Made by a program: the position numbers and the translations under genes. This document shows, in pieces, positions 6,277-62,003 of a DNA stretch of 64,000 bases. The DNA lies in IMG/VR virus record IMGVR_UViG_3300022744_000022, positions 62,001 through 126,000 of that record; one strand, given 5' to 3'. The notes beneath the pieces are model-generated. The model ran no database searches. It saw only the letters and a program-made list of their open reading frames with translations, and was not told the origin of the DNA. Each line of letters opens with the position of its first letter. Positions within the stretch are counted from its first letter, which is position 1.

Positions 6277-7165
6277 GGTCAACAGTTCAAACTGCCCGCT
6301 CTGTAAAGGGGCCCAATGGTTGTACGAGACCAAGGGCGAGGAAGTGATCCCGACCCGGTGTCGGTGCTTGGAGCGGAAGCTTCTGCACGACTTCCTGGGC
6401 CCGGAAATCTATCGCGCTCCCTGGGTCCCGTCGTCCCTGTACAACATCACGACCAACGAGGCCGGGGAGGTCGCGGGGGACCGGACAGAGGAAAACCTGT
6501 TCCTCAAGGGTTCGTGGGCCGTGGTTTGCCAGCACCTTCATTGGGCGCTCTCAGCTAAGCGTCTGTATAGCCCTAGGTTCAACTTCAAGATCGTGGGCAA
6601 CGACAAGCTCATGACAGTGTGGCTGGGTCTGGAGTCCTACACGCAACGGTCAACGGCGACTCGCAACGAGATCGAGACCAACAACAGCCTGGACGATCTT
6701 CTCGGCAACGCCGCTCTCGTGATCATCCGCCTCGATGGCCTTGAGCACCAGAACAAAGCGGCGGCCAACGTTCTGAAAGAGGCGCTCAAGGTCCGGGAAT
6801 TTGGGTACAAACCTACGTGGCTTGCCGAGTGCGGCCGTCGGTTTGGGCCCGGGCACCCGTCCTACAATGAAGCGGTTGGGGACTACATCGAAGAACGCTT
6901 CGACATTGTGGATCTCAGCGACGAAGATCCTAAGACCAGAGCGCAGCAAGCAGCCCTGGATGCAGCGGCCCAAGACATTATGGAGTCCGGTGAGGTCTCG
7001 ATGGGGGCCGATGTGGAAACGCCGCGTCTCGTGGACCCGCCAACTTCCAAGGAGCGCTTTTTTGCAGACCCCGAACCGGACCCTGAACCTGATTCTAGGC
7101 GTTACGTGCCAGGCGGTAAGGGTAAAAAACGCAACAAGGGCAAAGGCCAAGCGGAGCTTGAATAA
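6266..7165 (+). CDS. helicase-loader (DnaC/IstB-like) related protein, degenerate ATPase
   Basis: N-terminal CPLCKG...CRC Zn motif; directly upstream of DnaB; no recognisable Walker A. Confidence 0.45.
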   Translation: MPPEVNSSNCPLCKGAQWLYETKGEEVIPTRCRCLERKLLHDFLGPEIYRAPWVPSSLYNITTNEAGEVAGDRTEENLFLKGSWAVVCQHLHWALSAKRLYSPRFNFKIVGNDKLMTVWLGLESYTQRSTATRNEIETNNSLDDLLGNAALVIIRLDGLEHQNKAAANVLKEALKVREFGYKPTWLAECGRRFGPGHPSYNEAVGDYIEERFDIVDLSDEDPKTRAQQAALDAAAQDIMESGEVSMGADVETPRLVDPPTSKERFFADPEPDPEPDSRRYVPGGKGKKRNKGKGQAELE

Positions 7166-9936
7166 TGCCTAAGCGTCTACTTCGTTCCATCATCGAGTTC
7201 GATTCTGAGATCTCCTCGGAGAACCTCGTCCGTAACTTCCAACGTCTGCGGAAGGCCGTGGACGTTGGGCAGCTCGATTGGGGTCGTCCCGAAGACGAGA
7301 AGCTCTACAAGTACGCTCTCGGCTTCTTCATCCAGCACTTCGAGCTGCCGTCGGCTCAGACCTGCCTCGACTACTTTCAGAGCGTCAACAACGTTGAAGT
7401 CATCGAGCGTCTCAAGGATGTTCAGGTCGAGAAGCCGTACGCCCGCACGAACTTCGTGCATCTCTTGCGGACCCTGCAAGAGGATCAGGCCCGCCTAAAG
7501 GCCGTCGCGTTGCTCAAAGAGACGCACGAGATCCTGGTCAAGGGGATTGAAGACAAGAAGTCTGGGGTGGTTCAGAAGGGCGTTGAAGACGCCATCCTGC
7601 ACTTCACCAAGCGTTCGCAAGAGATCAGGGTCAACGACCACAACGTTCAGATCCACGGTGACATCCGGCAGGACGCTGAGCGGATGAAAGAGGAATACGC
7701 GACCGCTGAGAACGACAAGGGTAAGGTCATTGGCGTCCTGTCGGGCATCAACGAGCTGGATGAGTCTTGCAAGGGTGCCAAAAAGGGCGAGCTGTGGATG
7801 CACGCTGCATTTCCGGGCGAACTCAAGTGCGTTGCCGGGGATGCTACCCTTTTCGATCACGCAACCGGCAGGCTACGGACAGTTCGTGAGCTATTCGAGT
7901 CCGGAGATCTGCCTATTGTGACTGCGCTTGACCGTGAAGGTGAAACCCACAAACTTGTGCAGGCCCAGACTTCGCACCTTGTTGAAAACGGGATCAGGGA
8001 TGTTTACGAGTTATCGTTATCGTCTGGTCGATCTCTTGGGGCGAGCAACAACCACAAAGTCTTCACCCCCAAGGGGTGGCAACAATTGGATGCGTTGAGT
8101 GTCGGTGATTGGGTGGCTGTGCCGTCCATCATGCGAGCCGAACCGCCCAGAGCCTTCACAGATAGTGAGGTCAAAGCTGTTGGTTACTTAATTGGGGATG
8201 GTGCAGTAGACTACTACATCACCCTCACGAACTCTTGCCAGGCTGTGCGAGAGGACTTCAAAGGCTGCCTTCGTGACTTTGGGCTGCAAGAAGGTGCGGC
8301 GGACTACATCACCCCTAACTTCACTGAGAACTTCCCGGAAGACAGGGCACCTTTCATCCGAGTTAGTCACAGCTCGGGGTTGGGGAGTGCCGCAGTCCCA
8401 ACCTCAAGCCTACGCACGCTTCTGGAAGAGCTGGGGGTTTGGGGTTGCACGTCTCGCACAAAGCAAGTCCCTCAAGCGTTCTTAGGGCTTCCGGATGATC
8501 AGGTGGCGCTCTTTCTAGGTGCCCTTTGGGCAACCGACGGATCGTGCCACACAGGGGATCATGAGCGTGAGGACCGGGAATCCTTGTGTTCGCGTAATGA
8601 CATTTCTTACGCCTCGGTTAGCCGGGCCTTGTGTCTTGGGGTTCAATCTCTACTTCTGCGCCTTGGCATCCAGTCTACGGTTACAACGGTACAGACAACC
8701 TATCGAGGGGAACCCTACACGTTTTATTGTGTTCGTGTGGTAACCAACCCCTCGAAGCGGGTATTCGTAGAGCGGATCCAGGTCGCGGGTAAGGAAGATC
8801 GGTTTGCCGAACTTCAGCGTAGATTGCCCTCGACAGACAACCGTCCTTTCCCAACTGACTTCATCCCGGAGGGTATGAAGATCCGCTGGGTTGGGGTGAA
8901 CGGGGAACGGTGGCGTTACGCCACTAACACCAAAAACCGCCCGTCGGCGCAAGCAGACACACTACGTCTTTTTGCCACTGATCCGACTGTAGCGAAAGCC
9001 TTGGACGGGGACTTGGCATGGGAACAGGTGGCGTCTGTGCGGCTCCGTGGGCAGGAGATGACCTACGACCTTTCGGTCCCAGGGCACCACTCGTTTGTGG
9101 TGAACGACATCGTGACCCATAACACGATGCTTGCCTCGAACTGGTGCTACAACGCGGTCACTCGGTTCAAGAAGAATGTCGTGTATGTCTCGTTCGAGAT
9201 GCCTCGCGATCAGATTCGCCGCAACATCTACACGATCCACACTTCCAACGCCCGCTTCCTCAACCAAGGGTACCAAGGACTCGACTACCGTAACATTCGT
9301 GACGGTAACCTGACGAAGGCCGAGAAGGAGTTCTACTTCGACGGGGTGATCCCGGACTTCACCACAAACCCCACGTACGGCACGTTCGAGGTCGTGACCC
9401 CGGACCGTGAGTGGACCATGGAGGATGTGCGGTCTGAGCTTGAGCTTCTCCACAAGGAATTCGAGGTTGGGCTCGTGGTGCTCGACCACGGTCAGTGGAT
9501 TGAGGCTAAGAAGACCAAGAAGAACAAGGACTACACGATTGAGTTGAATTCCGTAATCACGGACGCTAAGCGGTTGGCTCTGAACTTTGATCACAACTCG
9601 GGCGTTCCTGTCTTGATGTTGTTCCAGATCAACCGTACGGGCAAAACGGACGCGGACAAGAACGAGGGCGTCTACAAGATGAACGCCTTGACTTACGCGA
9701 ACAACGCGGAGAAGACCGCTGACGTGATCACCACCACGTACCTCAACACTGAGATGCGTGCCGCTGGGATGACCAAGTTCACGAACCTCAAGAATCGAGA
9801 CAACCCGCTCTTTGACCCGTTTTCAGCCAACGTGAACTTTGGGTGGCGTCGTATCTCTAGCGGCAAGCGCATGGAGCCCCAGGGTTTTTCGGTGGACCAC
9901 CATTCCTCGTATCTGGGCGCTACGGAACAGGTCTAA
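7165..9936 (+). CDS. dnaB: DnaB-like replicative helicase containing an intein
   Basis: SGINELD...GELWMHAAFPGELK|TML (Walker A), YVSFEM, VVLDH, LFQINR, ADV, KNRD. Confidence 0.85.
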   Translation: MPKRLLRSIIEFDSEISSENLVRNFQRLRKAVDVGQLDWGRPEDEKLYKYALGFFIQHFELPSAQTCLDYFQSVNNVEVIERLKDVQVEKPYARTNFVHLLRTLQEDQARLKAVALLKETHEILVKGIEDKKSGVVQKGVEDAILHFTKRSQEIRVNDHNVQIHGDIRQDAERMKEEYATAENDKGKVIGVLSGINELDESCKGAKKGELWMHAAFPGELKCVAGDATLFDHATGRLRTVRELFESGDLPIVTALDREGETHKLVQAQTSHLVENGIRDVYELSLSSGRSLGASNNHKVFTPKGWQQLDALSVGDWVAVPSIMRAEPPRAFTDSEVKAVGYLIGDGAVDYYITLTNSCQAVREDFKGCLRDFGLQEGAADYITPNFTENFPEDRAPFIRVSHSSGLGSAAVPTSSLRTLLEELGVWGCTSRTKQVPQAFLGLPDDQVALFLGALWATDGSCHTGDHEREDRESLCSRNDISYASVSRALCLGVQSLLLRLGIQSTVTTVQTTYRGEPYTFYCVRVVTNPSKRVFVERIQVAGKEDRFAELQRRLPSTDNRPFPTDFIPEGMKIRWVGVNGERWRYATNTKNRPSAQADTLRLFATDPTVAKALDGDLAWEQVASVRLRGQEMTYDLSVPGHHSFVVNDIVTHNTMLASNWCYNAVTRFKKNVVYVSFEMPRDQIRRNIYTIHTSNARFLNQGYQGLDYRNIRDGNLTKAEKEFYFDGVIPDFTTNPTYGTFEVVTPDREWTMEDVRSELELLHKEFEVGLVVLDHGQWIEAKKTKKNKDYTIELNSVITDAKRLALNFDHNSGVPVLMLFQINRTGKTDADKNEGVYKMNALTYANNAEKTADVITTTYLNTEMRAAGMTKFTNLKNRDNPLFDPFSANVNFGWRRISSGKRMEPQGFSVDHHSSYLGATEQV
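7828..9123 (+). mobile_element. intein (432 aa) with LAGLIDADG homing endonuclease
   Basis: Starts CVAGDA, block B SNNHKVF, VGYLIGDG and FLGALWATDGS, ends TYDLSV...DIVTHN, +1 Thr. Confidence 0.93.
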
Positions 9937-21652: not shown

Positions 21653-21696
21653 ACCATAGGTGAACACCGCTAAACTGTTTATCTGTGGGCTGTAGC

Positions 21697-22560
21697 GTGA
21701 TCGCAGAACGTCTACATGGTCTGAGGGCAACAGATGAGTACAGCATCTGGGCCACGATTAAAGATAAGTGCTCAAACCCGAGCAGTAAAGCCTACCCTCG
21801 TTTCGGTGGACGTGGGCTTACGATGTATGGCCCTTGGGCGAATGACTTTAGAGTTTTCATTCGGGATTTAGGGCACCGCCCGGCCCCCGGGTATCGGTTG
21901 GTACGAGCAGATAAAAACGGTAACTTTGAGCCGGGTAACCTTAGTTGGAGCCCCGGGTCATACGTGGAAGCCGCCCCCTCCAATAGGGGGCCCGACGCTA
22001 AAACGCTTGCTCTGGTAGGACAAGAGTTCAACAAGCTAACTGTAGTTGGGGTGGTGCGTTACATTCGTGGGGATACGACGCAGACTTGCTACAAAGCAAG
22101 GGTGCAGTGTTCTTGTGGTAGCGCCCCCTTCACTCTTTTCGTGCAGGCCTTAGGTAAAACCCAATCTTGCGGGTGCTCCGTTGACTACGGATCACGGACA
22201 GGTGCAAAGAGTTACAAGTTTAGTGGCTACCGTGAAATACGCGGTAGCTATTGGGCGCACGTTCAGCACGGTGCTGAGACACGCGGCTTGCCTTTCGAGA
22301 TTTCCATAGAGTACGTATGGGGGTTGTTCGAGCAGCAAGACCGCAAGTGTGCTCTTTCGGGTGTCCCGCTTTCCTTTGGCCCTTACCAATCTAGACGAAG
22401 AGGGCAGACAGCCTCCTTAGACCGTATTGATGCTTCGCTAGGGTACGTGATCGGCAACGTGCAGTGGGTACACAAGTCGATCAACCTCATGCGTATGGAT
22501 CTCTCAGTCGAGGAATTCGTGAGGCAGTGCCGTCTGGTGGCCGCTAATTGTCCTTTGTGA
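21697..22560 (+). CDS. HNH-type homing endonuclease
   Basis: RFGGRGL..W..F...DLG.RP module and CALSG...SLDRIDASLGYVIGNVQWV module; lower GC. Confidence 0.8.
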   Translation: MIAERLHGLRATDEYSIWATIKDKCSNPSSKAYPRFGGRGLTMYGPWANDFRVFIRDLGHRPAPGYRLVRADKNGNFEPGNLSWSPGSYVEAAPSNRGPDAKTLALVGQEFNKLTVVGVVRYIRGDTTQTCYKARVQCSCGSAPFTLFVQALGKTQSCGCSVDYGSRTGAKSYKFSGYREIRGSYWAHVQHGAETRGLPFEISIEYVWGLFEQQDRKCALSGVPLSFGPYQSRRRGQTASLDRIDASLGYVIGNVQWVHKSINLMRMDLSVEEFVRQCRLVAANCPL

Positions 22561-39830: not shown

Positions 39831-40796
39831 TTGGACCAAGCCCTGCACTCTGAGCGTGTAGCTCACCGCTTCCTGATCGCCTCGTTCAAGCCGGGCGACT
39901 ACATCTTGTTCGGCAAGTTCCGGAACAAGCGTGGGCGCGTGGTCCGCATCTTCAACGATGAGCGGGACATCCCGTACATCGAGATTCAGCCGGTGCCCAA
40001 GGGCCGCAAGAAGAACAGGATTTTTGGGCTCTACACGATCCGCCAGATGACCCCTGAGGCCATCCAGGAAGCGCAGCAGTTGGAGGCGGCGGAACGGGCT
40101 CTCGTCCACAAGGTGGCGGCCCGTTACCTGGAAGCCACTCAGATGCCGCCTGGGTGGGTTGAGCACAAAGGGTCTGCGGGGCGTTCCTTTTGGATCAGCC
40201 CCGACGGTAAGGCGGAGATCAGCGACACGGGTCGTAAAGGCAGCCCGCAGCGCTTCCAGGTCTTCTTTCTTCAGGACGGGAAACGGCACGAGGACATCGG
40301 CTGGCCGTCCCTCAAGAAGGCGCTCCAGTACCTGAGTGGCGAAGTGGGGTTGAGTGCCCACCCAATGGCCAAGCGGGAGGGCGGCAACCTGGAGAACTTC
40401 CTGGACGGCTTCGCACGACGGCACTCTAGGCTTGGGCGGCTTCTCCCTAAGGTCGTGGAGAAAGCTCAAGGATCCAGCTCGGGGCACGGAGAAGCTCGCC
40501 AACACGGTAACGAGATCTGGCTGTTCCCGAAGTTCTGGGACCTCGATCTCAAGACCCAAGATTTCGTACTGGCTCACGAGATCGGGCACTATGCGTTGAG
40601 TCGGAAACCCGGCACCTGGTTGATGGACCTCGGGAAAGAGCTGGGCGTTGACGTGTGGGACACGGGCAGCCTACCCTTCGGACAGTTCAATCAAGACGAG
40701 GCGTTCGCGGATTCCTTTGCTAGTTACTTCTTAGAGCCGGGTGAACTGCGGAGACGCTACCCTGCTTGGGTTACTTTCGTTGAGGCCGTCCTGTGA
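39831..40796 (+). CDS. multi-module protein: KOW-like, unknown and zincin HExxH modules, two RVAxRF-type tags
   Basis: RVAHRFLIA, FKPGDYILFGKFRNKRGRV, KVAARYLEA, LAHEIGH...EAFADSFA. Confidence 0.7.
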   Translation: MDQALHSERVAHRFLIASFKPGDYILFGKFRNKRGRVVRIFNDERDIPYIEIQPVPKGRKKNRIFGLYTIRQMTPEAIQEAQQLEAAERALVHKVAARYLEATQMPPGWVEHKGSAGRSFWISPDGKAEISDTGRKGSPQRFQVFFLQDGKRHEDIGWPSLKKALQYLSGEVGLSAHPMAKREGGNLENFLDGFARRHSRLGRLLPKVVEKAQGSSSGHGEARQHGNEIWLFPKFWDLDLKTQDFVLAHEIGHYALSRKPGTWLMDLGKELGVDVWDTGSLPFGQFNQDEAFADSFASYFLEPGELRRRYPAWVTFVEAVL

Positions 40797-43700
40797 ACAC
40801 CATGCAAACACGATTGGTCGAACGCTTCACACGGGTAGGGGCCTACTCCGAGGACACCCTAGAGATTGTTGCGGCCGGTCTTGCTCTACTGATCGCGCAG
40901 AACTACATCGTCACCAACCCCTTCTTCGATGAGAAGGAGATCCGAAACTACCTGCTGTTGCGCAAGCAGTTTCACGGGGACTTCGTTCAAGCGTGCCTGG
41001 ACTTGGCAGACGCCTTTGAAGAGGGGCAGTTCGGTCAGGCGGTTCTACCCGCTGTCCCAGCCTTGCGGGCCATCGGGCATCTCGGGGTCAAGCAGGATCA
41101 GCAAGCAATCCGCCAACTCGCAAGAGCGTTCCGAGGGCTCAAGCACCTCAAGTACCGGGATGTCGAAAACCCGAAGCTCATGCGTCTCATCATGATGGCG
41201 CGTAAACTTGATGTCACCACCGGGGCAGATGGTAGGGACATCAAGGACTTCTTGGAGAATCTTGTTAAGATCCAGGCGGTGCCGACAAGACTCCGGACCC
41301 TTCTTCGCAAAGTCATCAAGTTGCCCGTCCCGGGCAGGACGCTCACCGAGAATGCCGATCCAGGCGCTTGGTTCGAGATGCCCGAGGACAAGAAACAAAG
41401 CCTTCGCGAGCTGACCGAGAAGGTTGAGCAAGAGCAGCTTGGGATCTGGGAGAAGTACAAAGACGCCAGTGACGATGAGCGGATGGCGGCTTACCAGAGT
41501 GCTGCCCGTCGCCTACAGAAGATTCAGAGCATCGCAGGCGTGAACCTGGGTGTTATCAAGCGTGACGATGAGGTCCCGCTTGACACGCTTTTGAAGAAGG
41601 AAACGCGACTCGAATCCGACGGACCGACGGAGTACACACGACTCAAAATTGAGGACTACCTCAAAAAGACAGGGGCGTACCGCTTCCAGCGCAAGGAAGG
41701 TGATCCGCTACCTCGTGAGGTCAGCAAGCTGCTCACATTGTTGCGCAAGGCCAAGACCTTCTCGACAATGCAGCGCGTGATCAAGGATGCTGTGGATCGT
41801 CAGGTGTTGGGCAGGGCGTCCACCGAAGATGTCGATCACATCATCACGCAAGCGAACAAGAACCGGGCGTTGAAAGAGGGGAAACCTCTCACGCCTCTAC
41901 AGTTCGAGCCTAAGAGCGTAGAGCAGTTTCAGGTGGACCACGATACGGGCCCCGTGGCGTTCGACCCTGAGTACACGGATGACGAAAAGAAGCAGTTGCT
42001 GGGTCGTGTCTCCCGTGCTTTGAGTGATCTAGAGAGTGTCTACGGAAAAGGCTTCTGTGGTAAGCATGCCAAGAAGCTCGCGTTCCGTTTCAACAAGGGG
42101 TACAGCGGGACCGCTTCCGCTCACTACTTCGTTTGGGATGACCGTCGGACGTGGCAACCCAGGGTAACGTTTGGTCCGGAGTTCGAGGGCCTCTTGGCTC
42201 ACGAACTCTCGCACTACCTGGAAGACTTGCTGGCGTACCAGATTCAGAAGCAGGACGAACCAGAGCGCATCGAGGCCCTCCTGGGTAAAGGGATCGAGGG
42301 AGGACCAGGCGTCCTGTTCTCCAACACGGGGGTGTCCCTGAGGCTCTTCGCTGAGGGTGGTGCCCTGGAGAGTTACCGAGGACACCTAAGTAAGTCGGTC
42401 CCGGAGTTCGTTGAGTTCATCGACGCCGTGCTTGCAACCCCGGACTACAAGCGCTGGGAGGACAAGCTTGGATCAGCGTACGACACCGCACTGCCCATGG
42501 CCATCAAGGCGCTGACAGGGATGAGCTACTACGACTTGCCCAAAGAGCACCCGTACTACGGTTTGATCGACAAGGCGCAATACCGCTCGGACCTGCCCCC
42601 GGAAGTGAACGACGAGACTCAGAAGCAGTTCAAGAACCTGATGGATGGGGATGGGCGCAAGCTCAACTACTACAACAGCTCCACCGAGGTCTGGGCCCGG
42701 ATGTGCGAGCAGTACGTGTACAACCGGCTGATCGATGCGGGGATCTCGAACCCCTGGCTCACACAGATGAACTACGAGGAAGATGTCTTCATGAACGAGA
42801 AGACCTTCGATACGCAGTTACGTCCGATTATGGACAAGATCTTCGCCAAGCTGAAAGGCCGCAAACTCATTGCCAGTGTGCCCATGAGCCCCTTGCGTGA
42901 ACGTCTGGCAGACCGCTTCTTGCTCATCAATCGGGTAGCTGCTCGTTACAAAGAGAAGAAGCAGGTAAAGTCGGAGGACGGCGGCAAGACTACCGTCTAC
43001 GTCTACTCTGAGCGGCAGATCGCCAATCGGAACAAGGCGAAGGCTGAGCGAGTCCAAAAGCTCAGCGGCGCTATCAAGAAGCTGAGGGCCAAGGTCAAGA
43101 AGGACTTGGGGTCCAAGGATCCTGAGACGGCTCGTACAGCACTCGCGGTGGCCCTCATGGATCATACCTATGAGCGAGTTGGCAACGAGAGTTCTGCCAA
43201 GGACGGGCACTTCGGGGTCACGGGGTGGCAGCGTAAGCACGTGAGCTTCGGCAAGGACGGGGCGTTCATCAAGTACGTGGGCAAGTCCGGGGTCAAGCAC
43301 GAGAAGAAGGTCACGGACTCGGCGATCCGTAGTGCGTTGAAGGCTGCTTACGACTCCCTGGAAGGTGATGACACGGGCGTTCTGGAGTGGGACGGGGGCA
43401 AGGTCACGGCCGAGAAGGTGAACCAGTACCTGGAGCCCTTTGACGTTACGGCCAAGGACATCCGTGGCTTCCACGCCAACGACCAGATGCGGGTCAACCT
43501 CAAGAGCGTGCGCTCGAAGGGCGGCTCGCTTCCTGAGGACAAGAAGAAGCGTGAGGACAAGCTCAAGAAGGAGTTCGCGGAAGCTCTTGAAGCGACCGCA
43601 GAGTGCGTGGGGCACGAGGCCGCTACACTCAAGAATCAGTACCTTGTCCCCGGCCTAGAGGACTCGTTTCTCAAGGATGGGACGGTCATCGACAAGCTCG

Positions 43701-43906
43701 GGAGCCAACACGAAGACGAGATCCCCGGCGGCTTGGCGGACAAGAAAAAGCCAAGCGACTTTGACCCCAAGCAACTCGCCAAGGGAATCAAGGTCGAGCT
43801 GGAGCACACCGATGATCGAAATCTCGCGCAAGAGATCTCGATGGATCACTTGACCGAAGATCCGGATTACTACAGCAAGCTTGAGAAGATGGAGTCGGAA
43901 AAATGA
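40793..43906 (+). CDS. large polyvalent protein: HExxH/LPD1-like, type IB DNA topoisomerase and DUF5661-like domains
   Basis: HELSH; STEVWARMCEQYV; RVGNE, YVGKSG, TAKDIR, VGH...NQY; GIKVELEHT...DHLTEDPDYYSKL. Confidence 0.85.
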   Translation: MNTMQTRLVERFTRVGAYSEDTLEIVAAGLALLIAQNYIVTNPFFDEKEIRNYLLLRKQFHGDFVQACLDLADAFEEGQFGQAVLPAVPALRAIGHLGVKQDQQAIRQLARAFRGLKHLKYRDVENPKLMRLIMMARKLDVTTGADGRDIKDFLENLVKIQAVPTRLRTLLRKVIKLPVPGRTLTENADPGAWFEMPEDKKQSLRELTEKVEQEQLGIWEKYKDASDDERMAAYQSAARRLQKIQSIAGVNLGVIKRDDEVPLDTLLKKETRLESDGPTEYTRLKIEDYLKKTGAYRFQRKEGDPLPREVSKLLTLLRKAKTFSTMQRVIKDAVDRQVLGRASTEDVDHIITQANKNRALKEGKPLTPLQFEPKSVEQFQVDHDTGPVAFDPEYTDDEKKQLLGRVSRALSDLESVYGKGFCGKHAKKLAFRFNKGYSGTASAHYFVWDDRRTWQPRVTFGPEFEGLLAHELSHYLEDLLAYQIQKQDEPERIEALLGKGIEGGPGVLFSNTGVSLRLFAEGGALESYRGHLSKSVPEFVEFIDAVLATPDYKRWEDKLGSAYDTALPMAIKALTGMSYYDLPKEHPYYGLIDKAQYRSDLPPEVNDETQKQFKNLMDGDGRKLNYYNSSTEVWARMCEQYVYNRLIDAGISNPWLTQMNYEEDVFMNEKTFDTQLRPIMDKIFAKLKGRKLIASVPMSPLRERLADRFLLINRVAARYKEKKQVKSEDGGKTTVYVYSERQIANRNKAKAERVQKLSGAIKKLRAKVKKDLGSKDPETARTALAVALMDHTYERVGNESSAKDGHFGVTGWQRKHVSFGKDGAFIKYVGKSGVKHEKKVTDSAIRSALKAAYDSLEGDDTGVLEWDGGKVTAEKVNQYLEPFDVTAKDIRGFHANDQMRVNLKSVRSKGGSLPEDKKKREDKLKKEFAEALEATAECVGHEAATLKNQYLVPGLEDSFLKDGTVIDKLGSQHEDEIPGGLADKKKPSDFDPKQLAKGIKVELEHTDDRNLAQEISMDHLTEDPDYYSKLEKMESEK

Positions 43907-54219: not shown

Positions 54220-54441
54220 CTACTCCCTTTCGCCTCTGGTCAGCACCTCGATCTGCGAAGCCAGTGGGTCCAGGGGCCACGGCTTGCCATTGAAGTGGGT
54301 TACCACAAGCCGTAGTGATCCCGTGTCGGCATCGTGGTAGCAGTCGCGTACGTCACCCAGCAGGCGCATGGTGCCGATGTCGCAGACGATCTGCGCATGG
54401 ATGTAGTTGGGCTCAGATGCCTGGAACTTGGTATTTGGCAT
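54220..54441 (-). CDS. hypothetical protein
   Basis: Preceded by the bipartite motif at 54475-54442. Confidence 0.6.
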   Translation of the reverse strand: MPNTKFQASEPNYIHAQIVCDIGTMRLLGDVRDCYHDADTGSLRLVVTHFNGKPWPLDPLASQIEVLTRGERE

Positions 54442-54475
54442 GCCGGTACAACACCTGAGCCCGGAGAAACTCTAG
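54442..54475 (-). promoter_or_regulatory. bipartite promoter-like motif
   Basis: CTAGAGTTTCTCCGGGCTCAGGTGTTGTACCGGC-ATG, near-copy of the 53536 site. Confidence 0.6.
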
Positions 54476-54516
54476 GGATGGTACTTCGAGCGGCACTCGT
54501 TGCACTGCGGCTGGTT
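54472..54516 (-). pseudogene. C-terminal fragment of split Zn-finger gene (NQPQCNECRSKYHP*)
   Basis: Supplies the second CxxC pair missing from the 55878 ORF. Confidence 0.7.
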
Positions 54517-54539
54517 CGCATTCGTTGCTTTGCACGAAC

Positions 54540-54830
54540 TCACGATTCGTCCCCCGGAAACGCGAGCCTGCACAGGACACCCACGCCAAAGGCATTTGCC
54601 CGCTCCTCGTTAGCGAGTCGAACGCGGAGGGCCTCGCGGCCTGCTCGCTCGGAGGCGAGGCATCGGCGCGCCCGACGCAGATCGCGCTCCAGTGCGGCGA
54701 CCAGCTCACGCAACCTGGAAACCTCGTCTTTTCGGGCCTGCCTGTCCGCATGGGACAAAGCCGCCGGCATGCGCTCATCTGCCTCGCTGGACAAGAGGCG
54801 CGAGCCTCGTCTGTACGCCGCCGCGCTCAC
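54540..54830 (-). CDS. hypothetical coiled-coil protein (element cargo)
   Basis: GGAG SD; 4-nt overlap with the upstream cargo gene. Confidence 0.5.
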   Translation of the reverse strand: MSAAAYRRGSRLLSSEADERMPAALSHADRQARKDEVSRLRELVAALERDLRRARRCLASERAGREALRVRLANEERANAFGVGVLCRLAFPGDES

Positions 54831-55471
54831 GACTTCTCCTCTTGGTCGTAGAACCAGATTGCAGTGCTCAGCTCTCTCGAATCGTGCTTCGCGGCGTCGC
54901 TGACCTCGCAGTCTTCCAGGCGATCCTCCCAGCTGTAGGCTGTCAACTGACGGGCCAGCATCACGACCTCTTCGGCCTTTTTGAGTCTCCGTTCGGCAGC
55001 GCCGGCCCTAGCGATCCACTCGTCCATCTCGTCGAGCAAGTGCGTCACACGCACCCCCAGGCCGTCGAAGATGACTGCGCGCCCGTCGAGCGCATCGAGC
55101 ACCTCGCGCAGCCTCACGTCCTCCGGCTTGGCCAGCTCCTCAGCGAGACTCTCGATGCGCATCGCCATCGACTCGACCTGTCTGGCTAGCGAGGCGTTTT
55201 CGGAACTGAGGTGATCGCTGTTCGAGCGCAGGACTTCGTTTTCACGAAGCAACTCACGGTTCCGCTCCTCCCAGTGCCGATTACAGCCCGGAGAAAGCTT
55301 GCACACGCCATCCTGGCCGCAGTCCTCGATCTCGCTGCGCTGCCGGATCTTCGGCAACGCGCCGCTGCATGTCATCGTCTCGCGGTCGTAGTTGCGCACC
55401 ATGCCGCAATGCGAGCAGACAGACCAACCCTCGCGCTCGTGTTTCGTCCACTCGTGCCCGGGGCTGCTCAC
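54827..55471 (-). CDS. Zn-ribbon and coiled-coil hypothetical protein (element cargo)
   Basis: GGAGG SD; HEW...CSHCG...C, CKLSPGC..HWEERN, heptads. Confidence 0.6.
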   Translation of the reverse strand: MSSPGHEWTKHEREGWSVCSHCGMVRNYDRETMTCSGALPKIRQRSEIEDCGQDGVCKLSPGCNRHWEERNRELLRENEVLRSNSDHLSSENASLARQVESMAMRIESLAEELAKPEDVRLREVLDALDGRAVIFDGLGVRVTHLLDEMDEWIARAGAAERRLKKAEEVVMLARQLTAYSWEDRLEDCEVSDAAKHDSRELSTAIWFYDQEEKS

Positions 55472-55677
55472 GACACACCTCCGCTGTTAACCGCGCGCTT
55501 CGTTCGCGCGGTGTAAAATTTCGGGTCGCGGAGTTTGTGAGCCAGCCTGTGAGCCTCAGCCTTGCTCAAAGGGCTCTCTCCGAGGTGGGTTTTGGTCCAA
55601 GCGCGGCGTCCGTCGAACACGTCAACGGCCCAGCCTTGCTTGTCATCTCGCGGTCTTACGTGGATACAGAGTTTCAT
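55468..55677 (-). CDS. hypothetical protein (element cargo)
   Basis: 69-aa ORF inside the insertion. Confidence 0.5.
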   Translation of the reverse strand: MKLCIHVRPRDDKQGWAVDVFDGRRAWTKTHLGESPLSKAEAHRLAHKLRDPKFYTARTKRAVNSGGVS

Positions 55678-55713
55678 GGCTCGTTAAATTCTCCGGCTGT
55701 TAACTTCGCGGAT

Positions 55714-55878
55714 TCAAACGAATCCCTTCCTGATCTCGCCGCCCTTCATGCGGCGGAGCCCGAAGTGCTTGGCACCCTTCCACTCCCCGCAATCGGTGCA
55801 GTGAAACTTGGCATTGGTCAGCACGACCTTGCCGGTGCGGTGGCGTACCGTTGTGTTTGCATCTTCATCTTTGCCCAT
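55714..55878 (-). pseudogene. N-terminal fragment of split Zn-finger gene
   Basis: AGGAG SD; MGKDED...FHCTDCGEWKGAKHFGLRRMKGGEIR, then runs into the element and stops after 4 codons. Confidence 0.7.
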
Positions 55879-61286: not shown

Positions 61287-62003
61287 ATGTTGCTCGGAAT
61301 TTCTGGTTTCGCGGGTTCAGGAAAAGACGCGGCGGCGAACTTCCTGGTTGAGGATCACGGCTTCACCAAGGTTGCGCTCGCAGACCCCTTGAAGCGCATA
61401 GCCCGCGACGTGTATGCCTTCACAGACGAACAGCTCTGGGGGCCGAGTCAGTTCCGCAACACTCCCGACAAACGGTATCCGAGGCCCTGCAAGACTTGCC
61501 GTGGGCAAGGGGACCGCGTAGATGCCGATGGGGCGTTCGAGCCCTGCCTGGGGTGCCACGGGGCTCGGGTCACGCACCTGACGCCTCGTGAGGCTCTCCA
61601 GAAGCTCGGGACCGAGTGGGGCCGCGAGTGCTACCCAGACACGTGGGTTGACCTTTGCATCCGAACCTCAGCCCACTTGCTGGACAACATCTACGCCCGT
61701 TACGATCAACAACGCGGGGCGTACCAAGCGATGGTGGATACCCAGAGCGCCCTCAACTACCGGATCAAGGGTGTCGCAGTCCCAGATGTACGGTTCCTCA
61801 ACGAGATCCGAGCCATCAAACAAGCGGGCGGTAAGGTGATCAGGATCTCGCGTCCTGGGGCTGGGCTCGACGGTGCGGGTGCTCTCCATGTGTCCGAGAC
61901 AGAGCAGGCCGGGTTACCCGACTCGATGTTCGATGCTGTGATCCAGAACACGGGGACCCTCGAAGACCTGAGGGCTGCGGTTCAAGCGTTCCTCAGCGAT
62001 TAA
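61287..62003 (+). CDS. deoxynucleoside monophosphate kinase
   Basis: GISGFAGSGKD, ADPLK, TPREALQKLGTEWGR, DVRFLNE, HVSE. Confidence 0.88.
   Translation: MLLGISGFAGSGKDAAANFLVEDHGFTKVALADPLKRIARDVYAFTDEQLWGPSQFRNTPDKRYPRPCKTCRGQGDRVDADGAFEPCLGCHGARVTHLTPREALQKLGTEWGRECYPDTWVDLCIRTSAHLLDNIYARYDQQRGAYQAMVDTQSALNYRIKGVAVPDVRFLNEIRAIKQAGGKVIRISRPGAGLDGAGALHVSETEQAGLPDSMFDAVIQNTGTLEDLRAAVQAFLSD

Follow-up and report, generated by a model that had tools for sequence, protein, structure and literature searches.

A small mobile cassette without a recognisable recombinase splits a phage gene

Insertion sequences of the IS607 family have a GG overlap dinucleotide that stands at both junctions and once in the target with no other duplication, a circular form with joined ends that is the proposed donor, and flanks that differ at every site with little pattern (PMC4058570). 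Members of this family encode a serine transposase (TnpA) with an N-terminal DNA-binding domain. MPME1 and MPME2, the ultra-small mobile elements of mycobacteriophages, are a fixed 439-440 bp, have short imperfect inverted ends (11-bp inverted repeats), one ORF of about 123 aa of unknown function and no recognisable transposase, add 6 extra bases at IR-L, can land inside genes, and are recognised by their presence or absence between close relatives (PMC3029335). Integron gene cassettes are promoterless, compact and co-oriented with upstream transcription, form head-to-tail arrays with exact junctions, lack an internal recombinase, and are recombined by IntI from an attI platform at an imperfectly palindromic attC site (R''/L''/L'/R' structure, GTTRRRY core, crossover in the R' box), with some use of weakly matching secondary sites. 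Large serine integrases act on an imperfectly palindromic attP around a 2-bp non-palindromic core and on one specific attB of about 40-50 bp, and gene-interrupting elements such as skin restore the interrupted gene by precise excision. Promoter-stem-loop (PeSL) bounded cassettes of T4-type phages are small gene cassettes bounded by repeated short regulatory sequences, and are thought to be shuffled between genomes by homologous recombination between the repeats in intergenic regions.

The locus analysed here is an insert that splits a small zinc-ribbon gene in a jumbo-phage genome, and lies in a 64,000-nucleotide stretch (the window; positions 62,001 to 126,000 of IMG/VR record IMGVR_UViG_3300022744_000022). 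A first-pass annotation, made from sequence alone, had described a 1.2-kb element without an integrase that interrupts a CxxC gene, and had read its joined ends as a serine-integrase-like attP; the features that it described were all confirmed at the stated coordinates. The 5′ ORF reads M...FHCTDCGEWKGAKHFGLRRMKGGEIR followed by KGFV and a stop codon, and the 3′ fragment encodes NQPQCNECRSKYHP followed by a stop codon (Table 1). Removal of the 1212-bp insert joins ATC AGG to AAC CAG and restores the gene. The annotation had set continuation of homologues into an NQPQCxxC-like sequence as a test, and a search using the N-terminal fragment alone found five intact relatives of 61-68 aa that carry CxxC...CxxC and continue RNQPQCxxC exactly at the predicted position, showing that the reconstruction is not due to chance. 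The closest relative (P0002, 64 aa, 92% identical) ends in GGEIRNQPQCNECRSKYHP, matching the predicted junction residue for residue, and its DNA has one AA at the site (GAGATCCGGAACCAACCG in locus L003 and GAGGTCAGGAACCAGCCG in loci L004-L009). Both junctions are supported by an independent assembly of the probable source run, at the same depth as the flanks.

Table 1 Features of the interrupted gene and the inserted cassette (positions of the 64-kb window)
Position	Strand	Feature	Description
54517..55728		Insert	1212 bp
55714..55878	-	Called 5′ ORF	Runs past the native codons through four element-encoded codons (KGFV) and a TGA inside the left end
55729..55878	-	5′ fragment of the zinc-ribbon gene	50 native codons, M...GGEIR, with the first CxxC
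55727..55729		TTC at the left junction	GAA on the gene strand
55727..55728	-	AA at the left junction	TT on the + strand; one of the two copies of the single AA of the empty site
55678..55728	-	Left end (LE)	51-nt non-coding leader starting AAGGGATTCGTTTGAATCC; stop codons in all three frames (TGA at 13, TAA at 27 and 43, TGA at 53), then GGAG and the ATG of p69
55468..55677	-	p69	Constant first gene of the family; 69 aa here, 69-78 aa in the family
54827..55471	-	p214	Cargo gene, 214 aa
54540..54830	-	p96	Cargo gene, 96 aa, function unknown
54515..54539	-	Right end (RE)	25 nt directly after the p96 stop codon, GTTCGTGCAAAGCAACGAATGCGAA; its last two bases (54516-54515) are the second AA
54515..54517		TTC at the right junction	GAA on the gene strand
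54472..54516	-	3′ fragment of the zinc-ribbon gene	Second CxxC; first codon AAC uses the right-junction AA; no start codon in frame
40793..43906		Phage protein with a Topoisom_I domain	1037 aa

The insert is one copy of a widespread family of tiny gene cassettes, for which no earlier description was found. Nucleotide homology to unrelated contigs starts and stops at 55728 and 54515, and the two ends recur, base for base, in 36 different left and 41 different right flanking contexts in phage-like contigs from sludge, soil, sediment and water, with the left end identical or nearly so in 14 sequence variants. A probe from inside p69 found the left end intact at the same base in about 15 of 18 informative loci, the other 3 being truncated at scattered positions. 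About 20 complete members were recovered, of 0.25-1.75 kb (247-1748 bp), each with the fixed left end, p69, variable cargo (0-4 genes) and the fixed right end, the minimal 247-bp member being just LE-p69-RE. Copies 99.4-99.5% identical sit in other flanks in sludge and soil runs, and a 94.6% identical copy sits between unrelated genes in locus L010, indicating recent spread. Orientation relative to upstream genes is strongly biased, whereas a count of how often upstream genes run into the left end was too noisy in this GC-rich DNA to be used. Megablast, blastn and tblastn searches of 50,697 phage records found no cultured relative of the phage or the element, and a scan of bacterial genomes returned only eight MAG contigs of inconsistent taxonomy, probably binned phage DNA.

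AA stands at both junctions in every copy and once in the only empty site recovered, and tandem members share a single AA; empty sites for three other insertions (loci L016, L029 and L036) had no exact match in IMG/VR. Preferred targets (AAYSSS-AA-GSSR) mirror the joined ends (AATGCG-AA-GGGA) at all ten tested positions, for example S at -1 in 34 of 36 (p=3e-5), G at +1 in 26 of 41 (p=7e-5), and Y at -4, A at -5 and R at +4 (p<1e-3). In the window copy the joined ends are more self-complementary than expected by chance (28 of 48 positions; 4 of 20,000 arm shuffles reach that number), although the 7-bp inverted arms (AACGAAT/ATTCGTT) are not kept in a variant left end that is also found in at least four contexts. 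Boundaries are sharp, with no variable coupling bases, and GCG precedes the left AA in only 3 of 34 contexts, which argues against a tyrosine-type overlap of 6-8 bp. Neither a contig with the empty site (GAGATCAGGAACCAGCCG) or the joined ends (ACGAATGCGAAGGGATTCG) nor a circle was seen in the source run, where the search covered Logan contigs, which drop rare forms. In metagenomes, all seven contigs with joined ends are tandem arrays and none has a terminal overlap; in two other contigs found, the joint likewise lies only within tandem arrays.

The three ORFs of the insert overlap at start and stop codons and have no significant Pfam or PHROG match. Searches of p69 and p214 using Pfam, PHROGs, PADLOC, PDB sequences, the ESM Atlas, and Foldseek against PDB and BFVD gave only a small DUF2188/DUF1508-like fold for p69 and a zinc ribbon plus coiled coil for p214. 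The predicted fold of p69 is three strands plus a helix, its invariant residues are R8, D11, G15, W16, D19, D22 and W27, and it is under purifying selection (dN/dS about 0.19). The p214 protein is predicted to consist of an N-terminal Cys-rich ribbon plus a long helical hairpin with no recombinase fold, and is mosaic, with interchangeable N- and C-terminal modules.

No recombinase was found in any member. Within the 64 kb analysed of the 208-kb contig, 70 ORFs (roughly all those of about 120 aa or more) gave no Resolvase, Phage_integrase or DDE family, and no window protein was shared with other element-bearing loci apart from three weak matches unrelated to recombination. In the few kb of flank sampled per locus, clustering of 630 ORFs showed nothing recurrent except cargo, and the top Pfam families of 199 representative proteins were RecT, YqaJ, helicases and methylases, plus two tyrosine integrases and one IS1595, with no serine recombinase. 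Two integrase candidates picked by a sequence-motif scan, and not confirmed by Pfam, lie several kb from the elements, and neither they nor the IS1595 gene is adjacent to one. Three IMG/VR scans with end or internal probes returned only short members, with no autonomous relative or transposase-bearing element with the same ends.

Compared with IS607, the family uses AA instead of GG at both junctions and once in the target, without further duplication, and its flanks differ at every site; however, no TnpA or TnpB is present, a constant 69-aa gene is carried with swappable cargo, the non-coding ends are very short, targets weakly mimic the joint, and the family was found only in phage-like contigs. 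Like the MPMEs, these are tiny phage-borne elements with short imperfect inverted ends, a small ORF of unknown function and no recognisable transposase, which can land inside genes and are recognised by presence or absence between close relatives, but there is no DNA or protein similarity to any of the phage records searched, no bases are added at the junction, AA is always used, and size varies with cargo. The cassettes resemble integron cassettes in being promoterless, compact, co-oriented with upstream transcription, arrayed head to tail with exact junctions and devoid of an internal recombinase, in the use of weakly matching sites and, in the window copy, in an imperfectly palindromic recombination site, but the junction (AATGCG-AA-GGGATT) has no attC architecture or GTTRRRY, the crossover is central, the end sequences rather than only their structure are conserved, every cassette starts with the same gene, and no intI/attI platform was found in the flanks sampled. 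As in large serine integrase systems, a 2-bp non-palindromic core sits in a roughly 48-bp imperfect palindrome in the window copy, although the 7-bp arms are lost in the variant left end, which is also mobile, and precise excision would restore the gene; in contrast, there is no integrase, insertion sites are unrelated apart from AA and about 10 weakly preferred positions, the size is 1.2 kb rather than tens of kb, and there is no evidence of regulated excision. Unlike PeSL cassettes, insertion here is into a coding sequence with no homology beyond 2-3 bases.

The interpretation offered by the first-pass annotation was partly supported. A discrete, non-autonomous mobile cassette without an integrase, with a shared 2-bp core and cleanly removable from the gene, is supported, whereas a large-serine-integrase attP, which implies one conserved attB, is not supported as stated, the behaviour being transposon-like and closest in anatomy to IS607. 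Nothing supports the suggested on/off switch, with no empty-site or circle form seen among the source-run contigs, which drop rare forms, and the alternative of a deleted remnant of a larger element is not supported either.

The best explanation, held with moderate confidence, is that the insert is a recent insertion of a small, promoterless cassette, one of a large family that lives in tailed-phage genomes, that enters DNA at an AA dinucleotide in the orientation of the upstream genes, no bases being gained or lost apart from the AA. The left end would stop incoming translation in every frame and supply a ribosome-binding site. The most likely chemistry is conservative, reciprocal recombination through a 2-bp overlap between a form in which the right and left ends are joined (a circle or a tandem junction) and a target that loosely resembles that joint, as serine recombinases and, among transposons, the IS607 family work. 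As the element encodes no recognisable enzyme, the enzyme would have to act in trans, and p69 is probably a small nucleic-acid-binding accessory or payload protein rather than the catalyst, although its retention in every member, even the minimal one, is not expected of a purely passive cassette. The insertion presumably inactivated the 64-aa zinc-ribbon gene. The split gene, the discrete ends, the AA rule, the target preference, the tandem arrays, the spread among unrelated phages and the absence of a known recombinase in the sequences searched are demonstrated by this analysis, whereas the 2-bp overlap rather than a 2-bp duplication, the joined-end intermediate, the enzyme class and action in trans are inferences.

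Of the alternatives, two are unlikely but survive best, and to an equal degree. The first is a cargo-carrying MITE-like element moved in trans by a DDE transposase that makes a 2-bp target duplication at AA (compare IS30 and IS630, which make 2-3 bp duplications). A duplication explains the junctions equally well, the termini without AA form an imperfect inverted repeat (GGGATTCGTT against CGCATTCGTT, 8 of 10 matching), and an IS1595 DDE gene lies 1.8 kb from the minimal member (locus L071). However, the dinucleotide and target consensus are asymmetric and copy the joined ends, whereas DDE transposases usually prefer palindromic targets; no transposase-bearing element with these ends turned up in the three IMG/VR scans; and the terminal repeat is weakened in the variant left end. 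The second is that the element is autonomous and p69, alone or with host factors, is a new kind of very small mobility protein that acts on the two ends. It is the only gene present in every member, is under purifying selection, has three invariant Asp and several invariant basic residues, and no other enzyme could be found, but it has a simple predicted fold, no Ser, Tyr or His is conserved to serve as a nucleophile, and distant relatives of about 40% identity sit in a locus without these ends (L076).

A single-strand transposon of the IS200/IS605 type (PATE-like), cut next to end hairpins by an HUH transposase in trans and inserted 3′ of AA, is very unlikely. No duplication would be needed, orientation is biased, and a 6-bp hairpin lies 3 nt inside the left end with another hairpin near the right end, but these are no more stable than shuffled sequence (z of -0.9 and -0.1), are unlike each other, and the left hairpin is broken without compensation in the mobile variant end; a two-base target is also shorter than the 4-5 nt of this family. 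A remnant of a larger integrative element is equally improbable: the lack of a recombinase and the palindromic joint of the window copy would fit, but none of the about 20 complete members recovered has an integrase or exceeds 1.75 kb, and the same short form sits in dozens of unrelated sites, so the short form itself moves.

Ordinary phage mosaicism by illegitimate or short-homology recombination of a popular gene module is suggested by many chimeric ORFs with breakpoints scattered through p69, some loci with only a right end, a recurring GTTAACAG boundary motif and common nearby RecT and YqaJ genes, but is highly improbable because random breakpoints cannot give the same first and last base in 36 and 41 independent contexts, and the window target has no homology to the ends beyond GAA. 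Cleavage of the left end by a poxvirus-type topoisomerase IB, a class that prefers CCCTT, is suggested by AAGGG at the boundary in all but one left-end variant (its complement, CCCTT, ends exactly at the boundary), by the TopIB domain encoded by the window phage and by right flanks that favour G at +1 and +2 (CCTT-like on the other strand), but is highly improbable because the window's own target reads TGGTT, the right end has no such site on either strand, no TopIB homologue appeared in the other element-bearing loci, and one-strand cleavage does not explain a reciprocal insertion. An intron or ribozyme was rejected as there was no Rfam match at E<=1, only 51 + 25 nt are non-coding, the exon does not end in U and the element does not start with GUGYG; Xer/dif-type modules were dropped, by inspection only, as targets have no dif-like 28-bp site.

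A more far-reaching possibility, which remains doubtful, is that this is a new class of phage-borne mobile element, a kind of cassette system for viruses, in which promoterless cassettes, defined by the 51-nt left end, the constant 69-aa leader gene and the 25-nt right end, would be moved between unrelated phages either by the 69-aa protein itself or by an external recombinase not yet linked to any cassette system, and would ferry accessory genes; DNA methyltransferases and a possible Lar-like protein are among the cargo. Phage genomes are mosaic, but very few dedicated vehicles for moving genes between unrelated phages are known, among them MPMEs, homing endonuclease genes and a few insertion sequences. 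As the ends total under 80 bp, finding the enzyme would give a compact, low-specificity DNA insertion system, and would also test whether a 69-aa protein can direct mobility. For genome annotation, the family explains a recurrent class of split or chimeric small ORFs in viral metagenomes. Given its exact ends and simple AA insertion rule, its interchangeable cargo, and the occurrence of nearly identical copies in sludge, soil, sediment and water, the family may be an active route by which accessory genes, including DNA methyltransferases, spread among phages, from 20-kb siphovirus-like contigs to a jumbo phage of more than 200 kb.

In order to determine whether the zinc-ribbon gene is genuinely interrupted, the sequence on either side of the putative insert was first examined on the minus strand. 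The 5′ ORF encodes 50 residues of a protein with a single CxxC (CTDC) before running on into four further codons and a TGA, and the remainder of the gene, carrying the second CxxC, lies beyond three tightly packed ORFs of 69, 214 and 96 aa with overlapping stop and start codons, none of which has a significant Pfam or PHROG match. GAA (TTC on the + strand) stands at both junctions, and removal of the intervening 1212 bp joins ATC AGG to AAC CAG. The coordinates of these and other features are listed in the table.

Coordinates of the split gene, the insert and other features of the window and of related loci (L numbers denote loci recovered in the searches)
Sequence	Position	Strand	Feature
Window	55878..55714	-	5′ ORF of the split zinc-ribbon gene; native part ends ...GGEIR, followed by KGFV and TGA
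Window	54516..54472	-	3′ fragment of the split gene, NQPQCNECRSKYHP, then stop
Window	54517-55728		Segment whose removal restores the gene
Window	54521..54300	-	73-aa frame opened by the ATG inside the right end (AATGCGAA), reading across the 3′ gene fragment and into the next gene
Window	55699-55704 and 55486-55491		GTTAAC(AG) motif in the left end and at the 3′ end of p69, where it encodes the conserved ...VN
Window	55340-55512		Break in Logan's assembly of the source run (173-bp contig)
Window	7165-9936	+	DnaB-like helicase gene interrupted by an intein with a LAGLIDADG homing endonuclease domain
Window	21685-22560	+	291-aa ORF without a Pfam hit
Window	40793-43906	+	1037-aa polyvalent-type protein with LPD1, a type IB topoisomerase catalytic domain and DUF5661
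L002 (IMGVR_UViG_3300036760_000306)	6885-7283		Uninterrupted zinc-ribbon gene lacking one C at the insertion point
L024	1611-1814		Homologue of the N-terminal domain of the 291-aa ORF
L036	5672-5890		Homologue of the N-terminal domain of the 291-aa ORF
L071	2241-3218		IS1595-type DDE transposase gene
L071	4994-5246		Minimal member of the family
L076	340-580		GTTAAC(AG) motifs, four occurrences, around a distant p69 homologue

The two pieces of the gene were searched separately. The 54-aa N-terminal ORF alone found five intact relatives of 61-68 aa, all of which continue ...R-NQ(P/A)QC-x-(E/D)-C. The relative P0002 (64 aa, 92% identical) ends ...GGEIRNQPQCNECRSKYHP, exactly as reconstructed in the first-pass annotation, whose observation of a split gene is therefore confirmed and passes the test that had been set for it. 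The DNA of these relatives is uninterrupted and has one AA at the site (GAGATCCGGAACCAACCG in locus L003 and GAGGTCAGGAACCAGCCG in loci L004-L009), and the flanking genes are syntenic, with an HD phosphohydrolase upstream and the 143-aa and RlaP genes downstream. In the relative at L002, the single missing C (AGGAACAGCC instead of AGGAACCAGCC) shifts the frame and fuses the gene to the next ORF, whereas P0003 has the same downstream sequence without the deletion; this could be an assembly error, a mutation or a footprint. The insertion is not an assembly artefact, as in Logan's independent assembly of the probable source run one 55.8-kb contig crosses the right junction and one 82-kb contig crosses the left junction, both at the depth of the flanks. 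This assembly breaks within the insert, where depth rises to about 13 against 10.5-11 in the flanks, suggesting that other copies of the boundary between the 69-aa (p69) and 214-aa (p214) genes exist in the same sample. The window is part of a 208-kb IMG/VR contig and encodes a family-A DNA polymerase, a DnaB helicase, ThyX, methyltransferases and similar functions; this is a jumbo phage with no close cultured relative.

The 214-aa cargo protein has more than 420 relatives, many of them 80-96% identical, on many unrelated contigs. Contexts retrieved for three of these show the same gene set between quite different neighbours, such as a DNA methylase and a DEAD helicase in locus L010. A blastn comparison of the window region with these loci showed that similarity begins at 55728-55731 and ends at 54513-54515, the ends of the insert, and nowhere else. 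The left end always starts AAGGGATTCGTTTGAATCC and the right end always finishes ...GCAACGAATGCGAA, while the sequence outside differs each time. Scans of IMG/VR with either end returned 25 and 22 loci, and a genome scan returned eight MAG contigs. In total, 36 different left flanks and 41 different right flanks were counted. Since this sample was selected by the ends themselves, the analysis was repeated using a probe located inside the first gene. Of about 18 loci with enough upstream sequence, 15 have the left end intact at the same base and three are truncated, at element positions 97, 166 and 169, indicating that the ends are a sharp hot spot and not an ascertainment effect. Runs from activated sludge, soil and wastewater hold copies 99.4-99.5% identical to the window copy, on contigs that diverge into other sequence exactly at 54515 and at about 55728-55739.

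Complete members of the family are 247 bp to 1748 bp in size. The first 51 nt, which form the left end, are non-coding and more conserved than synonymous sites in the gene that follows, and contain stop codons in all three frames (TGA at 13, TAA at 27 and 43, TGA at 53) followed by GGAG and the start codon. The first gene is always p69 (69-78 aa), which evolves under purifying selection (median dN/dS 0.19, dS 0.18). The AlphaFold model of p69 (pLDDT 76) is three strands plus a helix and resembles small proteins of unknown function, namely 2k7i (TM 0.59-0.64) and DUF1508-like phage proteins, and the Pfam match to DUF2188 is weak (E 0.13). The invariant residues of p69 are R8, D11, G15, W16, D19, D22 and W27, and no Ser, Tyr or His is conserved. 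The cargo is variable and includes the mosaic ribbon-plus-coiled-coil protein, the 96-aa protein, Cys-rich proteins of 121/143 aa, proteins of 79 and 85 aa (the latter with a weak Lar-like match), an N6_N4 DNA methylase (locus L054) and a D12 methylase fused after a p69 fragment (P0155). The minimal member, in locus L071, consists only of the left end, p69 and the right end, and has the IS1595-type gene 1.8 kb upstream. The right end comprises 25 nt placed directly after the last stop codon. Upstream genes lie on the same strand as the element in about 31 of the 33 contexts where a call could be made, whereas downstream genes are mixed, and no promoter-like site lies in the window copy. The members therefore look like promoterless cassettes that ride on the transcripts of the host phage.

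Every copy has AA at both junctions, and the only empty site available has one AA. Where two members are adjacent (loci L015, L019, L078 and L081) they share a single AA, and no other bases are added or lost. When tested against the composition of the outer flanks, the targets are otherwise diverse but not random, with a preference for G/C at position -1 (34 of 36, p = 3e-5), pyrimidine at -4 (27 of 36, p = 5e-4), A at -5 (16 of 36, p = 8e-4), A at -6 (14 of 36, p = 7.5e-3), G at +1 (26 of 41, p = 7e-5) and purine at +4 (33 of 41, p = 3e-4). The resulting consensus, AAYSSS-AA-GSSR, agrees at all ten positions with the sequence made by joining the right end to the left end, AATGCG-AA-GGGA. Targets thus look like weak copies of the joint, which also explains why members pile up head to tail. 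The joint in the window copy is significantly self-complementary (28 of 48 positions, reached by 4 of 20,000 shuffles) and has perfect 7-bp arms 3 bp from the AA.

The sharp boundaries and the single shared dinucleotide point to exchange through a 2-bp overlap. With a tyrosine-type overlap of 6-8 bp, the three bases before the left AA should often be the GCG of the element; however, they are GCG in only 3 of 34 contexts, and no variable coupling bases are seen in the window. A non-palindromic 2-bp overlap flanked by inverted half-sites is the hallmark of serine recombinases, and a fixed overlap dinucleotide combined with almost arbitrary targets has been proposed for the IS607-family serine transposases, for which the dinucleotide is GG, a circular form has been reported and flanks show little pattern (PMC4058570). 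Conservative recombination between a joined-end form and an AA-containing target is therefore taken as the most likely mechanism. The enzyme is not encoded in the element, as none of the cargo proteins matches a recombinase family or fold. No Resolvase, integrase or DDE domain was detected among 70 ORFs of the 64-kb window, roughly all those of about 120 aa or more. About 200 representative proteins from the flanks of other members, taken from loci mostly a few kb long and with some family lists covering only the top 25 families, gave mainly replication and recombination functions (RecT, YqaJ, PD-(D/E)XK, DnaB, helicases and methylases), together with two tyrosine integrases and one IS1595 transposase; neither the two integrase candidates picked by a motif scan nor the IS1595 gene is adjacent to an element. 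That the insert is a discrete mobile cassette inserted at AA can be stated with high confidence. Its movement by a serine-type enzyme supplied in trans is a more tentative proposal, since action in trans is inferred from the absence of a recombinase and the enzyme class is inferred from anatomy.

The first-pass annotation interpreted the joined ends as a serine-integrase-like attP and the element as a non-autonomous cassette mobilised in trans that might act as an on/off switch, and this interpretation is only partly supported. A variant left end (AAGGGTGACGTTT...) occurs in at least four different contexts (L015, L019/L054, L021 and L071), changes three bases of the ATTCGTT arm and destroys the 6-bp left hairpin, with no compensating change in the right end. 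The end hairpins are no more stable than shuffled sequence. No circle was found among the assembled contigs examined, in which all joined-end hits are arrays, and no second empty site could be found. In addition, p69 is kept in every member, which a purely passive cassette would not need, so that either its coding DNA holds cis-acting sites, or the protein helps mobility, or it is the payload that keeps the element in phages. Distant p69 relatives of about 40% identity sit in a locus (L076) without these ends, which has four copies of a GGTTAACAG motif that is also present in the left end and at the 3′ end of p69 and may be a module boundary or a binding site. The complement of the first five bases of the element is CCCTT, ending exactly at the boundary, which is the cleavage motif of poxvirus-type TopIB, and the window encodes a protein with a type IB topoisomerase domain, but the window's own target (TGGTT) does not fit. 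By eye, the 291-aa ORF of the window has an HNH-like C-terminal motif (SLDRID...GNVQWV) and an AP2-like N-terminal domain, and homologues of the N-terminal domain lie 157 nt downstream of an element in L024/L025 and 1.9 kb upstream of one in L036/L064.

Besides precise insertions, the family is heavily reshuffled. Representative p69 hits include dozens of ORFs (among proteins P0127-P0205) in which only the N-terminal or only the C-terminal part of p69 is fused to unrelated sequence, at breakpoints spread along the gene, and several loci keep the right end and cargo but not the left end. This ordinary mosaic recombination is superimposed on the site-specific behaviour and does not explain it.

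In the window, the zinc-ribbon gene is truncated after its first CxxC, and the second CxxC has no in-frame start, as the ATG inside the right end reads out in another frame. The gene fragments are undecayed, at 92% and 100% identity to P0002, and the element is 99.4-99.5% identical to copies elsewhere, so the insertion is recent. Nothing indicates reversible switching. In anatomy the family is closest to IS607, but it does not encode TnpA, the defining feature of that family. In lifestyle it is closest to the MPMEs of mycobacteriophages, but it shares no sequence, size or junction features with them. In organisation it recalls integron cassettes, although no attC or intI was found. No description of the family was found in the phage record collection, Pfam, PHROGs, PADLOC, Rfam or the literature searches. 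The family is placed with the small mobile elements of phage genomes whose transposase is unknown, and there is a real chance that the mechanism by which it moves is new.
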